Positions 29,154 through 57,967 of a DNA stretch of 64,000 nt are shown here, piece by piece; position 1 is the first letter of the stretch; each line of letters opens with the position of its first letter. The stretch is taken from positions 335,067-399,066 of the forward strand of contig MU619246.1 in assembly GCA_025201805.1 (NCBI GenBank), given 5' to 3'. Made by a program: the position numbers and the translations under genes. Origin of the DNA: Parasitella parasitica NRRL 2501. Taxonomy: Eukaryota; Fungi; Mucoromycota. Under the pieces are notes generated by a model. The model saw nothing but the letters and a program-made list of their open reading frames with translations. It searched no databases and was not told the origin of the DNA.

Positions 29154-30064
29154 TTATGTACACTTTTCAAATCGAAGGAAGTCAACAGCAATTTCTACAT
29201 TTTTCTTTTTATGAAATTTATACATCATTGGCACATCAAACTAGACATCAGCAAAACAGTGAGTTGTATGCAGGTCGACAATGTTGCTCAAAATACCTTT
29301 AATTCTGCCACGACTTCAAATGACACACCCCATTCCTTTGCCTTTTTTTCTATATGCTACATATAGATTGAGCTGCTGTTGTGGCGTAATGGACACTTCT
29401 TTACTTACATTTCGAGTTGATGATTTGTGTAAAGAGTAAACAGATGTGCCCGCGATCTAAGATCAACGCTACTATTTAGCAGCAGGGAAATCAATCGTAT
29501 TCGTCAAATAATACCTCTATCGCCTTATTTAACAGAATCATATCCACACCTTTATTGTTTTTTGTTCCAAATGGAGGGTTCATAATAATCGTATCTAACT
29601 TTCCCTTGAATCTATCCAACGTAGCTACACTTAAATCCGTATTTACAAAATCAATATCCACTTCAAACGTCTCACTATTTTCTTGCGCAATTTGGATGGC
29701 GTCCGGGTCAATATCAAATCCAACACTGTATCTGTAATTCACTGATTAATGATCCCATTCATGACAGCGTATAATCACCTAATTTTGGTTTTACCCTGCC
29801 CCTAATATATTTGCTGCTATACTTAATATGCCACAGCCACTACCAAAATCCCCAATGGCCTTATCCTCTATATCGTCGTAAACAGTATCGGCAGTGTAAA
29901 GCATTCTTGCAGCCAGATGAGGTGTCGTTGGATATTGTTCAAATTGAATCTTTGGCTCATCTGTGTCATATAAAAATAATAAATACAAATGCTTACGATT
30001 AAATATACAACATACCAAATACTTCGCAATCTTGTAATATACTCTCTAGTTCCTTCAACTTCAT
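29154..30064 (-). CDS. METTL5: rRNA N6-adenosine methyltransferase METTL5 (multi-exon)
   Basis: MKLKELESILQ, PKIQFEQYPT, GDFGSGCGILS SAM motif, NPPFGTKNNKG catalytic motif, VYSLHKSSTR and YKFHKKK, joined across short introns. Confidence 0.92.
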
Positions 30065-31409
30065 CTGTTGTACCTTGAAAAAGAAAAAATGTGAAGGAAG
30101 GGGGGCGGGATCATTACTTTCCTGTGACAAGCGAAAAAAAAAAAAAAAGAAAAGTTCGAGCCTTATGGCAGAAACAAATAGGCCGGATCTCATCCGTTGT
30201 TATGAACAATCAAACCCCTCTTCTGTGCCTAATTGTTGTCATGGTAATTTATTCCTTGTGTAATGAACTAATCGAATTGTAATGATAGCTCTGGTTTTTT
30301 TTTTAAAGTTTGAAAATGTGCCTCACACACTTGCTGATTTATACTAAAAGTAAATTGATGGTTGCCATGTGCGTTACACAATGGCGTAAATGAACTATAA
30401 TCCGTATGTTTAATGCCTGTATAATCTGAAATAGGGGTAAAAGGGGGCTAACCTGTCAATCCTACATGCGGCTACAGGTTCAATTAGTTAATTGATGGAC
30501 TGATCGACCTTTATTCGAAATATCGATGCATTTCCGTTTAGATTGAATCGAACTGGTCTTATAAGTAGACATGTATAAGCATGTTAGTATTATATTACGC
30601 GCATTTAAAAACTGGCCAGTATCGTAAAATTACGTAGTGCAATAAAGAACGAACTAATTACTAGCAATATTAAAACTATGATACAGTAAAAAGCAGCGAT
30701 GTGCAACTTCCGTAACTATAACAATATTTGGCATATTTTCTTTTTGAAATGCGTGCGAAACAACCGGGCAAAATCATTAGGGATAGCTTGAATAAGGTTG
30801 GGGTTGTTTCACCACATGTATAGGAAGATTTGCGGCTGCAATTAGAGAATTTACATTGGATGCAAATATTTGTTCACGGCAAGAGTGAGATTGTGGATAC
30901 CAAATGTCAAATTGATGAGTTGAGCTTTTCTGATTATGGATTAATTAATGGTCTATCGAATCATGCGCATATTTTACTTGAAATGGTATAATTTTGACAA
31001 CCCAATTTTGCTAGTGGTGAAATGGAGAATTTGATAGGTAACACTATATAATCGATCCACACACATACACACTTATGGCATGCTCTCGTTGCATGGTGAC
31101 ACACACATAAAATTAACTTAAGAAATGTAATATTTATTTGGTTTATAAAAAAGAAAAGGGTATACCCATATTTAAAGCTAAATAGAAAAAAAGTGCTTCA
31201 TTAGAACAAATAAGGTTGCTTTTGTTGGTTTATAGTAATAGTATGTATGTAAAAGAGAAAAATGTATATAAGTTTGTTGCCATATAATAAAGAGATGTAT
31301 GAATTTTTTGATTTTGTGCCAGAGATTTGAGAAACAATTGCAATATATATGTGTATATATATATATGTGTATGTATGTATATAATGAGGTTTGAAGTATT
31401 AAAAAGAGC

Positions 31410-31465
31410 AAGAGAAAGAGCGAGAGAAAGAGCGAGAGAAAGAGCGAGAGAGCGAGAGAGCGAAT
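31410..31465. repeat. 12-bp-period GA-rich minisatellite (AGAGCGAGAGAA)n in the 3' region of micro-ORF 1
   Basis: Directly visible tandem units. Confidence 0.85.
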
Positions 31466-31552
31466 AAGTGAGAAACCCGAGTATTTGGAAGGAAAGCAGA
31501 GTAACGTTGTAGAACAGAAGAACATGAATAGGCAAAAAGATGAAGGACCTAA

Positions 31553-31621
31553 TTAACGTCTCACACTAGGAGCAGGATATGGCCTTGGAAGAGGAGGTTT
31601 TATTGGTCTATCTGGTGGCAT
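31553..31621 (-). CDS. Proline/arginine-rich micropeptide 1 (22 aa, MPPDRPIKPPLPRPYPAPSVRR)
   Basis: ATG in AAAAATG context, TATATAAA about 90 nt upstream, and a paralogue at 33820-33918 with synonymous divergence. Confidence 0.72.
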   Translation of the reverse strand: MPPDRPIKPPLPRPYPAPSVRR

Positions 31622-31710
31622 TTTTGATGTATGTATAAGAAAAGTTGATTTGATTGTTGTCAAACTTGGTAAAGAAAAAAAAAAGGGATTGAGGCATCCG
31701 AATCAGTCTC

Positions 31711-31718
31711 TTTATATA
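31711..31718 (-). promoter_or_regulatory. TATA box for micropeptide 1
   Basis: TATATAAA on the minus strand followed by a pyrimidine tract and an AC-rich leader ending at the ATG. Confidence 0.6.
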
Positions 31719-32635
31719 CTAAATTACAAACGAACCTGTAGCACGAAACTTCAAACTTGTGCTACAAAATGCAACCTGCCTCCTAGTTGTTTTTGGGTTG
31801 ATTAAAATCCAAGTTGTTTTGTAAAAAGGATCGACTTGCTATTTTCCCCAATTTTTCGCTATCCAAATGTTACACTGTTTCTCTTTCGATATACGTTCTA
31901 TGTTTGTGTATACACCAAAACTATTATCCAAGTTAATTTGTCCTTTTTGGATTTTGTTTATAATACACAAAAAGCCAGGTTGAAAATATATCAGCTTGGT
32001 TGCAAGCTTTCTACTTTGGTCATAAAGTAGGTTGGAGTTACCGATATACATGGCGCTCTTTTTTTGTTTTTATTTAATTTTAGCTGAATATCTTACATGA
32101 GTAAAAAGGCAAAAACTGCTAATATTGTGCAACCACAGCAATTAGAAGCCATGTTCTGCAAGCGTTTTGGTTGTCAAATGTGCTAAACTGCCCCAATAGA
32201 CATTAACCCAGGGATACATGGGCATTTAAAATCGATCAATGATACAAAATGAGCACCATGAAATGAGTTTAGAATAAAGGAGATGTGCGAGGGTTGCTAA
32301 ATATTATACGCCGCATTGAATGGATTGACCCTGATTCAAACAGATGTTGTAGTTGCCCCGTTTCTACATAAACCTGTAAAAAGATCATTTCTCGTCAAGT
32401 ATAATGGCCACTTGACCACTATACATTGCACTTTTAGGTAAATAGCTTTACTGGTGCTTCCAATAGTTTTTATTTTTGCTTCACATGGCATATTTATTTG
32501 TTTTCCCTGCTTGCTTTACGATCCCAGAAAGCTTCTATAATGATTTTCTTATCCTGCTGATTAGTATGGACAATACCATGCGATTGCATTATACATTGTA
32601 GCGTTGAGTTTTTTTTTTTTTTTTTTTTTTTTTTT

Positions 32636-32645
32636 NNNNNNNNNN
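32636..32645. other. Assembly gap (10 N) after a poly-T run
   Basis: N run. Confidence 0.99.
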
Positions 32646-33410
32646 GATAGTTATACAGGCAGTTGGATAACCACGCGAAGTTCAGTGATTAAACGAAATA
32701 CCGACTGTACAGCAATAAAAAATAGTTTGGAGAACGTGAGCATGCGAATCGAAACAAGGTTGATGATAACAATACTAAAGTTACACGGATTTTTCAACAT
32801 CATAATCACGTCGATGTTTTCTTCCTCCCATTTTTGATGATAGCCCGACGAGTTCTTTTGACTATAGCCAGAATTGTAATACGCGCCTGAATATTTCGTA
32901 CCGACTAGATTGAGAAAAAAAAAAAAAAGGCTTCAGGTGCTGTGGAAAGCACTAACCATGCCACAACAATTTGCTGTCTTTCGCTTCCAGCTTTATATAC
33001 ATGCAATGATCCAAGTCTACAATAATAATATCAATGTAGTGTGGATTAAACATGCACAATGTGCTACCGTCATGTTGACATCAAAATTCAGCATTTATTG
33101 CAGGGTGAATGTACAGCAAATCGAATAATTTGTGCTACGTTAAATATGGTTGACATTTTTGTCCCACCGCATGTACAGATTTGAGGTTTTTTTGGGCTGC
33201 CAACAGGGTTGCACCAGATAATTTTATTTTACCAACTTGAAATGGCTTGGCTCCTGAGACATAAGTTATGAAGATGTGTTATAGTAAGGCACCACACTTG
33301 AAGTGCAGTCGTCCTTCGGGGCCGCATCCTGTGTACATTGGAGTAGGGTGTCGAATGATCCCAAGCTGCGAAATCGAATCACCACACTGCTCTTAGCCGG
33401 CCTCGGTTTC

Positions 33411-33582
33411 TTTTTTACCAACAATCGTATTGGGTTTCCCTGGGCTTGTTGTTCGCCTGTCATTCTTACCCTATCTAGGCAGACTGCAAACATCTGGAGT
33501 TATGTCAAGCAGGAATTTTGACAATACTGGTGTATCCGCGGGCTTGGCTGGTAGGATAACTCGTATTCCCTTTGTCCCTTTT
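33411..33582. repeat. Dispersed repeat copy A (copy B at ~56905-57075), degenerate coding-like sequence
   Basis: ACCAACAATCGTATTG...CCCTATCTAGGCAGA...CATCTGG is shared by both copies in the same orientation. Confidence 0.8.
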
Positions 33583-33819
33583 CCTTAACCGTTTATTCTC
33601 TGGATTACACGTTAAAAATGAATAAAACAGCCCTGCTTGGCTTTCCTTAAAAAAAAATAGTAGAGTTGTGCTGTTCATACATATTTTTATTTGTTATATC
33701 ATATAAAATACGAGTATTTTGGGTCATTGTGTGCACGTTTTTAACAAAAATATCATATAGAGCCTTAAGAACATATTTTATTTGCCAATTGCATTGTGTC
33801 TTTGTTGGTTGTTGTCAAT

Positions 33820-33918
33820 TCATTGTTGAGAGGGTTCCGTAGGTTTAGCATTAGGACGAGGTACATAGGGTTGATATGGTCTTGGGAGGGAATTTTTTAT
33901 AGGTCTGTCTGGCGGCAT
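33820..33918 (-). CDS. Proline/arginine-rich micropeptide 2 (32 aa, MPPDRPIKNSLPRPYQPYVPRPNAKPTEPSQQ)
   Basis: ATG at 33918, TGA at 33820-33822, TATAAAA about 60 nt upstream. 13 of the first 15 residues match micropeptide 1. Confidence 0.72.
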   Translation of the reverse strand: MPPDRPIKNSLPRPYQPYVPRPNAKPTEPSQQ

Positions 33919-33977
33919 TGCTGAAGTTTAGCTTTGAAAATGATTTCTGGTCGAATTAATGGCATTGAACTCGTTTC

Positions 33978-33984
33978 TTTTATA
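33978..33984 (-). promoter_or_regulatory. TATA box for micropeptide 2
   Basis: TATAAAA on the minus strand about 60 nt upstream of the ATG. Confidence 0.55.
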
Positions 33985-36900
33985 TTTGTAAAAAAAGATT
34001 TCCATATTTTTTGGGAATAAGAACGAATTATTTCAAGACGAAAGTGCCGAGTTCTTTGAACTGGCAGTTATGCTTGTTAAATGAAAGCGTTATAAGTATG
34101 TTTGTTCCATCAATATATTATATCATTAGTGCTCTGCTTTTTTACACAGCCGATTCTACTTTGATTGCAATATTTTGCAGCCTTTTACTGGATGTGCACA
34201 ATATTCATTGCATGTGCACAATGTTTTGCAGAATCTTTGCTCCTTCCCTGGCCTTCAAAAAAAAAACTATTGTAAGAACCACTTTTGCTTTTTATGGCGA
34301 TTTTAAAGACAAAGAGCTTAGTAAAAAAAGAGCGGCAGAACAAGATGGTGAGCTCATGCACTATTAGAATCATTAATTGAGAAGACCTTACTATGCTGAT
34401 TGCCTTAATTCCTTCAAACAAATCAGCTATTATTTTAATGTCTTGTTTGCGTACAACGGCGCAAGAAGGAAAAGGTGTTGGGATTTACCAGGACTGACAA
34501 TAATATTTGTTATAATATTGTGGCAGGCCAAAAAATGTCTCTGCTCTGAATGAAGGCGGTTCCTTGACTCTTTGGTTAGCAGTATTTCTTGTATTGTCGC
34601 TGCAGAGTTTCAATATTTTCTGTTGTGGTTACTTGGCGATCTTTTGCATGCAATTCAAGCAATAGTATAAATTAAACGTATCTTTTCTTTTCAATAAACT
34701 ATTATCATATTTATGATTGAAAGAAGATCAATTCCAGTAATTCACACCATTGTATGAAGGGTTTTATTCGATGAAATCCCTAACTACACCACTACTGCTT
34801 ATGCTAAATTTATTTTTATTATATGTACATGCCCAAGGTTTTCTCATAAAACAAGACTGAAAGGATTATGTATAGTCGAGAGCCTACTACTCATATACAT
34901 GAAATAGCGACATTCCAAATTTTTACATAAAAGCAGCACATCAGCGAGAAGGTTTAATGTGAATCAGGGCATATTTATAATGGTTTCAAAAGCAACATTA
35001 TATTTTGCATAAAGCAACATTGTGCACTTGAAGCAGTGATCCATTGCGAAACCTTGTAAAATCTTGAGAAGCTTTTTGCACAAAGCAATGCAAAAAAAAA
35101 AGTCCACAATTCACCATTTAATGCAAGATACATTTCCCAAAAACCACGAAGTTTTCAGGTGGCAAAAGTCCAAGTAATCTGAACACGAGATTGCTCATAT
35201 AAAGTATCAGCATGTTGAGGGAGGGTGAAGATAAATGTCAAATCATGAGATGTTTGACATTTGCAAATGACCTGTCAGAAAAATATCTTCATATCATTAC
35301 AGCCAAAATGCTACTAGATGGCAATTCTCGTAAACACGCAGCTGTGTTTTGTTTGAATTCACTCTCGTATAATAAACCCTTTTTTAACTAACATGACCAT
35401 CAGTTTGAGAGCCCTTTTGTTGGAATTGTTTGTTATTTGTTATTCAGGATCTATAAACATCACTGGGCCAGTTTGTGTAGCATGCGCTGGCATTCTTATC
35501 GATACCATAGTGAGCTTCATCTCATGATGTATATATTGATAAAATTGTTTTTTCCCATACCAATGTGATATACTACTTGCCGTGTTATATGTATATGGTA
35601 TAATCCGGGTACCAATTTGCATCGAAATCTTGGACTTTATTGTCGATGACTGAGCAGTAGGGCGTAAGCTGTAATCAAAACAATAGGCATTATAACGTTT
35701 CATTCTGCGCGATGGCTAAATGCAGCCACACCAATGCATAAATCAAAGCATATATATCTGTATGTTTATGAGTATAGTATATGGTTATCAGAACATTAAT
35801 ATATCTACGGATACTAATCTTTAATGACATGAAAGTTTCTTCTCTCTTTAATTGTTATTAGCCACGAGATGCATGCATAAATAATCTGCGAGGCAGTAAA
35901 AAAAAAATCTATTGTGTCGAATGCACAATGCATTCTTAGAAACATCAGTTATTGGACAAAGGTCGCTTGGGGCTATGAAACAGTTGTTTCTTTTTATTAT
36001 AAAGTGATCTCATTACAATACGGGCTCTTAAGCCGTAATAAACAAGATCAACATATTTGCCCCTTACATTGGTACCACCCATATGTATTTCAATGCCATC
36101 TATTACTTTCTATCTTGTGTAATTTAAAACGATAAAGGTGCATAATAAAAACTTGGGAATGCAGAGAGTACAGCGGGATAAAATGTATGAAAAACTCATG
36201 ACCCAAATATACTTGATATAATAAAATCATGTACATGCATTCATGTTGCTTATGACAAATCAGGGCCCTCTCTTGGGTAGTGATGATACAAGAGATGATG
36301 GCTACTGTGATTTTCACTAACCGGAGCTTTCCCTATGCTGAGGGGCCGAACCGTCGCTTTTGTATATATCATCAATCACTACCTGCTGGTGCTCATCATG
36401 GGTGCCTTTGACTATGAAATAAATCCAGTCGTATACAACACGTTGAATAATCTTTTTCGATATGAGTATATATCTTCATTATACGGTACATTTTTTACTA
36501 AACACTGTAGTAAATATATTCATATCATTTAATAAAAACTGGCGCTCTTTTTATTTTTCGCACCTTTTTTCAATTAAGAGAATCTCTATTCTATAACATA
36601 TACTACTTGTTAGTATAAAAATATAGTATATTTTCTTCAACTGATTTATTTTTTTAATACGGCTCATTCAAAGCACAATTACACCGAAATCACTTAAAGC
36701 ACACTTGTTGAACGCAATTTTATAGCCGCGCTAAGTTTCTTGATCTTTACAAGTGTACCGAATGATTTGTCTAACAAAATAAATATAATCCATTACATTA
36801 CCATCGATTTTGCAAAATTTCTTGGCTTATTTGCCATAATAGCACATAGAATTAGGACACACTGTACTTTTGGAAACAGTGTTAAAGCAGCAAAAGACTT

Positions 36901-37722: not shown

Positions 37723-39760
37723 TTAATCAACCTCTTCGACAGTAGGTCCAGAGTCTCCACCACCAGGAGCACCAGGGAATCCACCGGGAGCGCCTCCAGG
37801 AGCACCGCCAGGAACACCACCAGGAGCGCCACCATTTTCTTGATAGAACTTCATCATGATGGGGTTGGCAGTTTCTTCAAGCTCCTTTTGACGAGACTCG
37901 TACTCTTCTTTGGAAGCTTCTTGTGAGTTATCCATCCACGAGATACATTCATCAATGGCTGCCTGGAGCTTCTGCTTGTCATCATCGGGCAATTTACCAC
38001 CAACCTTTTCATCTTGAAGAGTGTTGCGGAGGTTGTAAGCGTATGATTCAAGGCCATTCTTGGCTTGGATACGAGCAGCAGCAGCCTCATCTTCAGCCTT
38101 GTACTTTTCAGCATCGTTGACCATGCGCTCGATGTCTTCCTTGGAAAGACGGCCCTTATCATTGGTAATGGTGATCTTGTTGGATTTACCGGTGGTCTTG
38201 TCAAGAGCAGAGACGTTCAAGATACCGTTGGCATCAACGTCAAAGGTAACCTCGACTTGGGGAACACCACGAGGAGCAGGAGGAATGCCGGTCAGTTCAA
38301 ACTTACCAAGGATGTTATTATCCTTTGTGCGAGCACGTTCACCTTCAAAGACTTGAATAAGGACGCCAGGTTGGTTATCAGCATAGGTAGAGAAGATCTC
38401 AGACTTCTTGGTGGGGACAGTAGTGTTACGCTTGATAAGAGGGGTCATGACACCACCAGCTGTTTCAATACCGAGCGAAAGAGGAGCAACATCTAAGAGA
38501 AGAAGATCTTGAGTCTTTTCAGACGTGTTACCGGTCAAGATGGCAGCTTGGACAGCAGCACCGTAGGCTACGGCTTCATCAGGGTTGATTGACTTGTTGG
38601 GCTCCTTGCCGTTGAAGAAATCAGAAACCATCTTTTGAACCTTTGGAATACGAGTCGAACCACCAACAAGGACGATATCGTTGACATTAGCCTTATCAAT
38701 CTTGGCATCACGAAGGACTTTTTCAACAGGCTCCATTGTGTTACGGAAAAGATCTTGGTTCAGTTCTTCAAAACGAGCACGAGTCAAAGAAGTGTAGAAA
38801 TCAACGCCTTCAAAGAGGGAATCGATTTCGATTGTGGTTTGGGCTGCAGAAGACAAGGTGCGCTTTGCACGCTCACAAGCAGTGCGAAGACGACGAACAG
38901 CACGGGCATTGTTAGAAATATCCTTCTTGAACTTGCGCTTGAATTCTTGCATAAAGTGATCAACGAGACGATTGTCAAAGTCTTCACCACCCAAGTGAGT
39001 ATCACCAGCAGTAGCCTTGACTTCAAAGATACCATCTTCAATAGTCAAGAGAGAAACATCAAAGGTTCCTCCGCCCAAGTCGAAAATCAGAACGTTACGC
39101 TCACCCTCGACCTTCTTGTCCAGACCGTAGGCAATAGCAGCAGCAGTGGGTTCGTTGATAATACGGAGGACGTTCATACCGGAAATGGCGCCAGCGTCCT
39201 TGGTAGCTTGACGTTGCGAGTCGTTAAAGTAGGCAGGGACGGTAATGACAGCGGAGTCGACAGTGCCACCCAGATAGGCCTCAGAAGTTTCCTTCATCTT
39301 GACAAGAATCATGGATGAGATTTCTTCGGGAGTGAAAACCTTGGTCTCACCCTTGAATTCGACTTGGATGTTGGGCTTGCCCTCCTTGTCAATGACCTTG
39401 AAGGGCCAATGCTTCATGTCAGCTTGAATTTCAGCATCGCCGAAACGACGGCCAATCATACGCTTAGCATCAAAGACAGTGTTATTGGGATTCATCTACA
39501 AAAGAAAAAGGGGCACGTGAATTAGCAGAATGGACGCGATTGACGCTAATGTTGGAGGGGGGGGGGGGCTATCATATACTTACAGCAACTTGATTCTTTG
39601 CAGAATCACCAATGAGACGTTCGGTATCCGTAAATGCAACGAAGGAGGGAGTGGTGCGGTTACCTTGATCGTTTGCAATGATTTCAACACGATCATTTTG
39701 CCAGACACCAACGCAAGAGTAGGTAGTACCCAAATCAATACCAACAGCGGTTTTAGACAT
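37723..39760 (-). CDS. HSP70: Cytosolic Hsp70 (SSA type). Exons 39760-39584, 39495-37723
   Basis: [32 protein letters not shown] repeats and C-terminal GPTVEEVD. Confidence 0.98.
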
Positions 39761-55991: not shown

Positions 55992-57967
55992 ATGGTAATC
56001 TGCTTTGATAGGGAGCATGTTTATCACGACGAGCTTTATTTGATTCATGATCGTCGTCTGTAAGTAAGGCAGAACGATGAGCTCTTTTAATCATCAGCAT
56101 AACATGTTGCATGCCACACATCACTTCATAGCTTATTTTTATACGTGCGCAAATGTACAGCGGATCATGGCGCAATAAATGTACGATAAAAAATCCGGAG
56201 AAACTATATAGCTGATGGATAAATATATACTATTCAACATGTGTACAATAACCGATCCCATAAACATATTTAGCAAAATTACCAAACACTCCTTGTTGGA
56301 TTTTCTACAAGCAACTTGGCGAAATTGTAAAATTGTCAAACGTGATACAACCGCACAACTTCACTCACTGTATTTTTGAGTTATTGTATCCATGTCGATT
56401 ACATATGATGTTTAATTTGACAAAGGCCGCTAATCAGTTTGGTATTAAACGCATGACAAGCACCGCATCGTGTACTTCACTGATCGTAATTATTGAGTCA
56501 TTACCGTGGCGTGCCTATATGGTAATAGATTTTGCTAAGGATTGCCTTTTTGACAAACCCGCCAACAATAAGGCCAAATCGCTTTGCATTAGAAAATACA
56601 AGATACGAAAGTCAATCTTCATTTCGTTTTTCTTGGCTCTTGCCCAAAATATAATTATAGTCTTTTTCTGACATTTTGTTGCTTGAAAGGTAATTCTTGT
56701 ATAGATGTATCCCATCGTATTTTGGATCTGTTCTACTATTATTATTTTTCTACATTTTTTATCGTAACTGCTGATGCGCCTATAGGGATAGGTTTTTCTA
56801 GTATTTAATGTCATTTTCATGAAATACACATTATCAACTTTTTGTGTATATATTGACACAGAATATCCCTAGAGTTTAAGCTGTAAAATATCCTCGATTT
56901 TTATTTTTTTTCACCAACAATCGTATTGAATTTCCTTGGGCTTGATGTCTGTCTCTCACTCACCCCTATCTAGGCAGAATTCACGCATCTGGTGTTATGA
57001 AGCAGGTAATACCACAATGGTGGTGTGTCAGTGGCTTTTAGCTAGTATAATAACCCGTGTGCCCTCAGTCCCTTTGTTTCGGCCCCAGCAAGATCACCAT
57101 TCATCATCGCCTTATAATGGACTTGACCGAATCTAATGAATTAAATTTTCAAACATTTCAATTACATTGATGCTGGAAACAGCAGGCTTGAGAGGAGGAG
57201 TGTTGCAAAACGTTTCTTAACAACAGCTTTGAATAACTTGTGAGTCTTTGCTCTAATCTTTTATGTCAAGTGCATAGTTTTTTGTGATACTAAAAATTAA
57301 AATAAAAAAGAGTAGGTAAACACAGGCTTTGCAATACCACTGTCAATGCACATACGCGTACACATCAAAGTATTTGGCCTTCTTGCCCTTGTTTGTATTT
57401 TTGAAGTGATTCTAAAAGTTTATAGCAGGGTCAATTGTTGCGACAACCTAACAAAAAGTAACAAACAAGCTTACGATAGGCATGTTATGTATTTTGAGAA
57501 TATATGACCAAAATAATTTGTCGAGACTCCCCTTTTCTCTAATAACATGTAATCAACACGGAGACAACAACTCGAAAATATAGCGAGTGAGTTGTGCGGT
57601 TGTCTCACGTTTGACAAATTTACAAATATAAAACTTTCTTCAAGTAGCTTGTATGAAATTAAACAAGGAGTCTTTGGTATTTGTGCTAAGTATGCTCATG
57701 GGATCAACACTTGATAGTTATTGTAGATACATGCTGCATAGTATATATTTACCCATCAGCTAATAGTTTCTCCGGATTTTTCATAATATATTTGATCCGC
57801 TGTACATTTGTACACGTATAAAATGGGCTAGGAGAGTGATGTGTAGCATGCAACATGGTATATCGATGATGAAGAAAGCCCATTGTTCTGCCTTACTTGC
57901 AAATAAAGATGATGAATCAAATAAAGCTCATCGTGATAAACATGCTCCCTATCAAGCAGATTATCAT
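55992..57967. repeat. Long degenerate inverted repeat (arms ~55992-56405 and ~57547-57967) around a ~1.1 kb spacer; possible foldback or non-autonomous element
   Basis: For example TGATAGGGAGCATGTTTATCACGA pairs with TCGTGATAAACATGCTCCCTATCA, and AAATGTACAGCGGATCA with TGATCCGCTGTACATTT. Blocks stay collinear over ~415 bp. Confidence 0.9.

Follow-up and report, generated by a model that had tools for sequence, protein, structure and literature searches.

The 64,000-nucleotide stretch of the Parasitella parasitica NRRL 2501 genome analyzed here (contig MU619246.1, positions 335,067 to 399,066; hereafter 'the window') carries, between its HSP70 and METTL5 genes, two very short open reading frames on the minus strand, which we call ORF1 and ORF2. 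A preliminary description of the window presented them as an old, duplicated family of TATA-driven, proline-rich micropeptide genes that standard annotation would miss. Reading the minus strand of positions 31400-34200 alongside the ORF listing places both frames exactly where they had been reported. Their N-terminal 15 residues agree at 13 positions and the corresponding DNA at 36 of 45 nt, and all five synonymous codon pairs pointed out at the start are present (CCA/CCG, GAT/GAC, CCA/CCT, CTT/CTC and AGG/AGA). Similarity within the frames resumes beyond a 12-nt in-frame indel. The flanks are dissimilar, as had been noted: the two loci cannot be aligned except for a weak match of about 25 nt immediately 5' of the ATG. 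A degenerate back-translation of the 15 shared residues matches these two sites only in the window, with 0.00 matches expected from shuffled sequences, and the first eight codons, used as a pattern, find the same pair and nothing else in the 32.8-Mb assembly. No third family member was found in a scan with a C-terminal pattern. We could thus discard the possibility that both frames are fragments of one repeat family, with flanks as conserved as the frames themselves: there are two genomic copies, their flanks do not align, and the dispersed repeat nearby (33311-33600) is an element of its own.

We used HSP70 orthologues as anchors to retrieve 10-kb flanks at thirteen loci from eleven related assemblies, and scanned these in six frames for the peptide motif. 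Ten orthologous copies of the small open reading frame (sORF) were identified, nine in the fetched loci (seven named species and one further Mucor assembly) and one on a metagenome contig. All ten agree in their ATG and in the position at which the frame stops, the stop codon itself being TAA, TAG or TGA, so that the conserved-frame orthologues looked for in support of the preliminary description do exist for ORF1. The copies come from at least four Mucorales families, and each of the nine related intervals, like the metagenome contig, has a single one. At every sORF-bearing locus the sORF lies on the strand of HSP70 and METTL5, and wherever the fetched locus includes METTL5 the sORF starts 1.4-1.8 kb upstream of it (1557 nt from the ATG of ORF1 in Parasitella). 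As had been predicted, annotation has missed them: no called-gene table that we examined has a gene at the sORF positions.

Conservation of the surrounding DNA shrinks with distance. With the Mucor circinelloides group, the alignable block of Parasitella spans the promoter and 5' leader, ORF1 itself and an extended 3' region in which AATAAA-like blocks occur. With Thamnidium, the alignment is reduced to 31645-31528, that is, the frame and about 25 nt on either side. Between Mucor/Parasitella and the Thamnidium/M. flavus clade, only the frame with these short margins and the TATA box can be aligned. The gene order around the sORF is also stable: CK2-beta, HSP70, a small opposite-strand gene (101-139 aa), the sORF, METTL5 and an 86-92-aa gene follow each other from Rhizopus to Mucor, and the HSP70-METTL5 spacer, 3.6-8.4 kb long, carries almost no annotation in any of the genomes (loci L012-L024).

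Purifying selection at the protein level, also proposed initially, is borne out by four phylogenetically independent pairs of sequences. With the Nei-Gojobori method these show 25.8 synonymous differences at 65.5 sites and 13.2 nonsynonymous differences at 180.5 sites, a ratio of nonsynonymous to synonymous proportions (pN/pS) of 0.18 (one-sided Fisher test, p = 1e-8). Variable sites number 5, 4 and 18 at codon positions 1, 2 and 3, respectively, and 14 of the 21 residue columns are invariant. The metagenome copy differs from Mucor at 9 nt over the first 19 codons and all nine changes are synonymous, including AGA to CGC; more generally, pS reaches 0.5-0.8, near saturation, in distant copies in which the residues are unchanged. 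Every indel is a multiple of three: Parasitella ORF1 has a 3-nt insertion, Backusella an indel of 3 nt, the tail of the metagenome copy one of 6 nt and ORF2 one of 12 nt. The peptide consensus is MPPDRPxKPALPRPYPAPVKR. Most lineages, from Backusella to Mucor, share the C-terminus PAPVKR unchanged, and Rhizopus has PPPVKR; the last few residues differ in Parasitella ORF1 and in the metagenome copy. The nucleotide conservation seen among close relatives had left an RNA or DNA element possible; given the distant copies, we treat ORF1 as a protein-coding gene. Coordinates of the features and the list of orthologues are given in Table 1.

Table 1. Features of the HSP70-METTL5 interval in the window, and orthologous copies of the ORF1 frame in other genomes (position column: window coordinates, or locus handle for orthologues).
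Feature	Position	Strand	Remarks
ORF1, putative micropeptide coding sequence	31621..31553	minus	22 aa + TAA
ORF2, apparent diverged paralogue	33918..33820	minus	32 aa + TGA
ORF1 TATA box TATATAAA	31711..31718	minus	97 nt upstream of ATG
ORF2 TATA-like box TATAAAAG	33977..33984	minus	66 nt upstream of ATG; not homologous to ORF1 promoter
Palindromic element GTAGCAC-N14-GTGCTAC	31738..31765	minus	about 20 nt 5' of ORF1 TATA box
Block conserved with Mucor circinelloides group	31024..31806	minus	69-73% identity (blastn)
X1 perfect-match contig over ORF1	31422..31607	.	186 nt, k-mer depth 2639
CT-rich microsatellite, ORF1 3' untranslated region	31339..31465	minus	Parasitella-specific; Mucor has a short TCTCTC only
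A27 tract (minus strand) and 10-N assembly gap	32609..32645	.	between ORF1 and ORF2
Conserved island B	33047..33094	minus	48 nt; 726 nt downstream of ORF2 (blastn)
Dispersed repeat copy, about 300 nt	33311..33600	.	inserted downstream of ORF2; at least 8 genomic copies
HSP70 ORF	37723-39495		anchor for orthologue retrieval; 100% identical to an NCBI protein from P. parasitica
M. lusitanicus record (GCA_001638945.1; about 3,989,600 on AMYB01000003.1)	L012		21 aa, ending VKR
Second Mucor assembly	L013		21 aa, ending VKR
M. velutinosus	L016		21 aa, ending VKR
Thamnidium elegans	L014		21 aa, ending VKR
M. flavus	L017		21 aa, ending VKR
Mycotypha africana	L022		21 aa, ending VKR
Backusella circina	L021		22 aa, one codon more, stop TAG
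Rhizopus microsporus	L023, L024		21 aa, stop TGA
JGI metagenome contig copy	L019		23 aa; from one pattern scan of JGI metagenome contigs

Each Parasitella frame has a TATA box upstream and a purine at position -3, A in ORF1 and G in ORF2, in agreement with the preliminary description. In ORF1, three Mucor, Thamnidium, M. flavus and Backusella, the TATA box lies between -93 and -110 relative to the ATG, and in Rhizopus a TATA-like box is present about 58 nt 5' of the ATG. In all, eight of ten loci keep a TATA box in the range from -93 to -110. The start context is A-rich, with the -3 purine, in all copies. Upstream of the TATA box of ORF1, a palindromic element is kept in the Parasitella/Mucor group, and a recognizable similar dyad occurs in Backusella; we presume that it is a transcription-factor site. 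This perfect inverted repeat encloses GAAgtTTC, which resembles a two-unit heat-shock element, and HSP70 is adjacent to the gene. Heat-shock control may be considered as a candidate reading only.

RNA evidence comes from two small contig sets, X1, assembled from the same organism, and X2, from another study and under another organism label; k-mer depths in these sets are indicative only. The X1 contig for METTL5 (1316 nt, perfect match, depth 637) skips a 55-nt GT..AG intron (29961-30015) and most intergenic bins have zero depth, which indicates that X1 derives from RNA. The X1 contig over ORF1 covers codons 6-22 and the TAA, followed by 130 nt or more of 3' untranslated region, where it enters the CT microsatellite. 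It is aligned outright over 31466-31607, while the remaining 44 nt, to 31422, follow from the contig size, the alignment being repeat-masked. In X2, a 197-nt contig ending at 31603 is the sole perfect match of any length across a 5.9-kb stretch. As the X1 contig is collinear with the genome, a GTGAGA that overlaps the last codons is not a used splice donor and the stop codon is present in the mature RNA. We therefore rejected the idea that the micro-ORF is the first exon of a longer spliced gene: the contig is unspliced through the stop and the GTGAGA, and the orthologues keep the stop position.

Our preferred interpretation, to which we assign a probability of about 0.72, joins three statements: ORF1 is a TATA-driven gene, ancient in the Mucorales; its peptide acts in trans; and ORF2 is a lineage-specific duplicate. 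ORF1 would be a stand-alone small gene, fixed at its distance from METTL5 and on the same strand, and producing a short, abundant mRNA. Translation would yield a cationic peptide of 21-23 residues, about 45% of them proline; as counted in the sequences, 9-10 of 21-22 residues are prolines (43-45%), the net charge is about +4, and there is one PRP and one DRP motif. Nearly all residues are constrained, not the prolines alone, and no globular fold is possible, which suggests an extended, sequence-specific contact with a partner. Most likely, the peptide would act as an extended polyproline-II ligand that fills a channel or a proline-recognition surface of some abundant partner; an SH3-type domain or the ribosome would be examples. 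The SH3 ligand class known as 'RxxK' has the core D/N-R-x-x-K-P. A DRPxKP stretch is found in both Parasitella copies and in nine further copies, Backusella having ERPPVWP and no lysine, and this likeness to the RxxK core may be a lead to the partner.

Several observations weigh against this interpretation. In close orthologues, synonymous sites are unusually conserved, which could result from the codon bias of a highly expressed gene or from an additional constraint at the RNA level. Translation of ORF1 is deduced from its evolution. The RNA contigs carry no strand, and they end 14-18 nt inside ORF1 (at 31607 and 31603), short of the ATG; the METTL5 contig, taken as a control, likewise ends 12 nt inside its coding sequence (ATG at 30064, end at 30052), so that contig ends should not be equated with transcription starts. 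Within 10 kb of HSP70, no sORF was found in M. mucedo, M. hiemalis or M. saturninus, where it may lie farther away. The remaining points concern ORF2. Transcription had been expected of both frames, and an RNA contig was found over ORF1 only: ORF2 has none in X1 or X2. No ORF2 orthologue is found in the intervals of relatives, and in the C-terminal part of ORF2 pN (0.40) exceeds pS (0.17).

The history of ORF2 can be traced in part. Of the 'old duplicated family' put forward initially, the old gene stands and the old duplication is not supported, since the related intervals are single-copy; the duplication looks young and asymmetric. Furthermore, ORF1 and ORF2 have in common codon states seen in no other lineage, namely ATA-AAA (codons 7-8) and CCA (codon 14), as would be expected if the duplication took place within the Parasitella lineage or if gene conversion occurred. 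To judge from these sequences, ORF2 looks like a tandem duplicate specific to that lineage. Position argues in the same direction: in Mucor, the single sORF is followed downstream, at about 750 nt, by island B, close to the spacing of this island from ORF2 in Parasitella. Another island (35440-35371) is found upstream of ORF2 at approximately the Mucor spacing. The Mucor-alignable block of about 780 nt that comprises promoter, frame and 3' region (31806-31024) goes with ORF1 and not with ORF2. On the simplest reading, the gene would have been duplicated in tandem and the two copies would then have decayed in a complementary way: ORF2, lying upstream, may have retained the position and the islands, lost the promoter and 3' region and gained a repeat insertion, and the downstream copy, ORF1, may have retained the functional unit.

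Both islands have features of their own. The upstream one (35371-35440, minus strand) is 70 nt long and shows 82-85% identity to Mucor in an otherwise unalignable block downstream of HSP70. The interval 33017-33094 (minus strand; 17916-17963 in L012) is 87% identical between Parasitella and the Mucor circinelloides group and was not seen in more distant loci. It reads ...NFDVNMxVAHCAC..., three of four differences being synonymous, in a frame that is open over about 70 codons in Mucor and forms a 25-aa ORF in Parasitella. It could be a small coding exon, an sORF or a regulatory element.

What ORF2 is today is a separate question, on which we are about evenly divided between a functionally shifted variant and an early pseudogene. 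Over its first 15 codons, pS is 0.56 and pN 0.09 (pN/pS 0.16, p = 0.003), and in a simulation nine random substitutions gave two or fewer changed residues in only 0.2% of cases. Beyond codon 15 it has a 12-nt in-frame insertion and a diverged tail, the ancestral stop position is read through, and the conserved C-terminus is lost together with the ancestral promoter and 3' region. ORF2 may be a low-level variant, or one specific to certain conditions, or else a copy whose decay began only recently. For this frame taken by itself, a dead relic of the duplication, in which the open frame and the N-terminal similarity reflect nothing but incomplete decay, is a serious contender at somewhat less than even odds. 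The absence of an RNA contig in a run where ORF1 is deeply covered speaks for it, as do an ancestral promoter and 3' region that can no longer be recognized, the repeat inserted 220 nt downstream and the replacement of a C-terminus that is invariant among orthologues. A dead relic, however, accounts poorly for the low pN/pS of the first 15 codons, for 32 codons free of frameshifts and stops where the flanks have diverged beyond alignment, and for the presence of a new TATA box and a -3 purine.

With regard to the trans-acting peptide, we may also hypothesize that ORF1 is a cis-acting regulatory sORF: translation of a stall-prone nascent chain would matter, for example by sensing polyamine or eIF5A status or by controlling its own mRNA or a downstream gene, and the released peptide would have no role. 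PPD and PPP motifs are eIF5A-dependent stall sites. The sORF starts with Met-Pro-Pro-Asp, is proline-rich from residue 2 on and contains 9-10 prolines; arrest peptides, too, are conserved at the amino-acid level, and the position upstream of METTL5 on the same strand is constant from Rhizopus to Mucor. In length (about 20-25 codons), in residues conserved across fungi and in stall-prone composition, the sORF indeed resembles regulatory upstream open reading frames such as the fungal arginine attenuator peptide and the polyamine-responsive frames. It appears to differ from these in lacking a visible main ORF further along the transcript: the RNA contig has no second ORF for at least 130 nt past the stop, and the Mucor-conserved 3' region holds no conserved reading frame. 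The METTL5 transcript assembles apart, with zero X1 depth in the bins from 30194 to 31375, although gaps between contigs prove nothing. In addition, ORF2 retains the peptide without any conserved downstream sequence. We consider a cis-acting role improbable.

Slightly less probable still is a cytosolic peptide resembling the proline-rich antimicrobial peptides (PrAMPs), which would block bacterial-type ribosomes or DnaK/Hsp70 in, for example, endohyphal bacteria, competitors or organelles. PrAMPs are short, cationic, proline- and arginine-rich peptides with PRP motifs and Pro-Arg repeats in their cores, and in the (Y/R)L core the Tyr or Arg stacks on the A-site cleft (PMC4797290). The Mucorales peptide shares with Type I members (oncocin, pyrrhocoricin, metalnikowin, Bac7) a length of about 20 residues, the positive charge, more than 40% proline, the PRP motif and a KPP-LPRP stretch, which recalls the oncocin stretch KPPYLPRP as it stands in a reference title in PMC4797290. 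In contrast to them, it is near-invariant across families, whereas immune-type peptides usually diversify. It also has no secretory precursor: there is neither signal peptide nor pro-region, the frame is the entire peptide, and upstream of the conserved Met-Pro-Pro the orthologues show either in-frame stops or sequence that is not conserved. The residue before the Leu is neither Tyr nor Arg, the stretch being PPL or PAL, and the Leu itself is replaced by His in Thamnidium and Backusella. Lacking the core Tyr or Arg, an invariant Leu and a secretory precursor, the peptide fails to qualify as a PrAMP. A PDB profile search (chains of at least 20 residues) yielded only a marginal, low-complexity proline-rich match, mL52 (E = 0.022). 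A wider version of the idea, in which a Mucorales-wide cytosolic PrAMP analogue plugs the ribosomal tunnel or an Hsp70-type chaperone and the mycoparasite Parasitella has evolved a second variant, is just as doubtful. If it were true, the analogue would, for example, police endohyphal bacteria or tune organellar translation, and fungi would have in it their first PrAMP-like effector that is intracellular and signal-less.

[quoted passage not shown]

The comparison with those lncRNAs is instructive all the same. In their preprint, Tahiri et al. catalogue conserved intergenic lncRNAs of M. lusitanicus and R. microsporus, with Parasitella as a comparison species; their lncRNAs number 622 and 470 (10.1101/2025.10.01.679568). 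The sORF transcript is likewise unannotated, intergenic and conserved among M. lusitanicus, Parasitella and R. microsporus, and would count as conserved under the preprint's definition; in contrast to an lncRNA, the micropeptide locus is clearly coding, and this strong coding signature rules the lncRNA class out. Identity with one of the four lncRNAs disrupted in the preprint (lncRNA1-4) was rejected as well, since the four guide RNAs fail to match the Rhizopus locus. Some 'conserved intergenic lncRNAs' of Mucorales may thus be peptide mRNAs. A search for known RNAs with Rfam (gathering threshold and E <= 1) and a tRNA scan found nothing.

Other known systems resemble the locus to varying degrees. 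Fungal precursors of ribosomally synthesized and post-translationally modified peptides, such as the MSDIN-like ones, have a variable core between a conserved leader and a conserved follower, with processing enzymes nearby. We rejected this class: the sORF is conserved over its full length, and its neighbors are HSP70, METTL5 and CK2-beta, with no adjacent cluster of peptidases or modifying enzymes. The closest parallel is with sORF-encoded micropeptide genes, such as tal/pri of Drosophila and the vertebrate micropeptides first taken for lncRNAs. Like them, the Mucorales gene consists of one very small, independent ORF on what appears to be a short and abundant transcript, has been missed by annotation, and is recognized by the conservation of start, stop and frame and by a low ratio of nonsynonymous to synonymous change. 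Unlike them, the peptide is fungal, so far restricted to Mucorales, unrelated in sequence, extremely proline-rich and devoid of a transmembrane segment, with apparently one ORF per transcript. We would thus place it, from its sequence, as a new family within a known kind.

The preliminary description recognized no described family, and we found none either, in Pfam, the PDB, the ESM Atlas, a representative sequence library or the literature, the queries being short and of low power. A profile hmmsearch over 1.8 billion representatives found 0 matches, Pfam returned nothing and the ESM Atlas no usable match, and neither ORF2 nor a TTG-extended ORF1, looked up exactly, had a record; as queries of this length are unable to reach significance, such blanks say little. 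A literature search returned no paper for 'MPPDRP' and nothing relevant on small open reading frames in Mucorales. To our knowledge, conserved micropeptide genes have hardly been described in early-diverging fungi.

Among the carriers of the sORF are fungi that cause mucormycosis, namely the Mucor circinelloides group and Rhizopus microsporus. An apparently high expression combined with near-invariance suggests an important lineage-specific role. Each internal Lys or Arg except for the last pair precedes a Pro, so that the peptide should resist trypsin, residues 1-20 staying in one piece, and targeted mass spectrometry should as a consequence detect it without difficulty. For the effects of losing the promoter and the C-terminus, the Parasitella duplicate is a natural case for comparison.

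The spacing of ORF1 and ORF2 involves an assembly gap. The N run (32636-32645) adjoins the A27 tract; ORF1 is about 1.0 kb away and ORF2 about 1.2 kb, and as the run falls within neither frame both readings are independent of it. No contig bridging the gap was found in the two contig runs searched, so that the distance of 2.3 kb is an estimate and, with the direct adjacency of the two frames, depends on the scaffold. In Mucor, Mycotypha and Rhizopus, HSP70, the sORF and METTL5 lie in this order on one contig, which supports the view that both sides of the gap belong to one interval.

The interval had been called a gene-free block, a term that needs a caveat, since it contains further conserved islands and a dispersed repeat. 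Genomic copies of this repeat are 73-88% identical, with indels that are not multiples of three, and a further copy is present in the window at about 56904-57075. Paralogues of it occur within X1 RNA contigs of 406-859 nt and Rfam gives no match; it may be a repeat similar to short interspersed elements or miniature inverted-repeat transposable elements, or an uncharacterized RNA family. A third TATA box, GTATATAAAG, at about 32991-32999 is followed by a T-run and by a 16-codon ORF (32782-32832, minus strand), whose start context, ATCAAAAATG, is the same as that of ORF1. This ORF is not conserved in Mucor and has no RNA contig over it, and the arrangement is probably due to chance. Finally, METTL5, each exon of which encodes at most 83 aa, has a 45-nt element (30353-30397, minus strand) about 300 nt 5' of its ATG. 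At 95.6%, the identity of this element to M. lusitanicus greatly exceeds that of the intergenic DNA around it, and presumably it serves METTL5 as a promoter or regulatory element.

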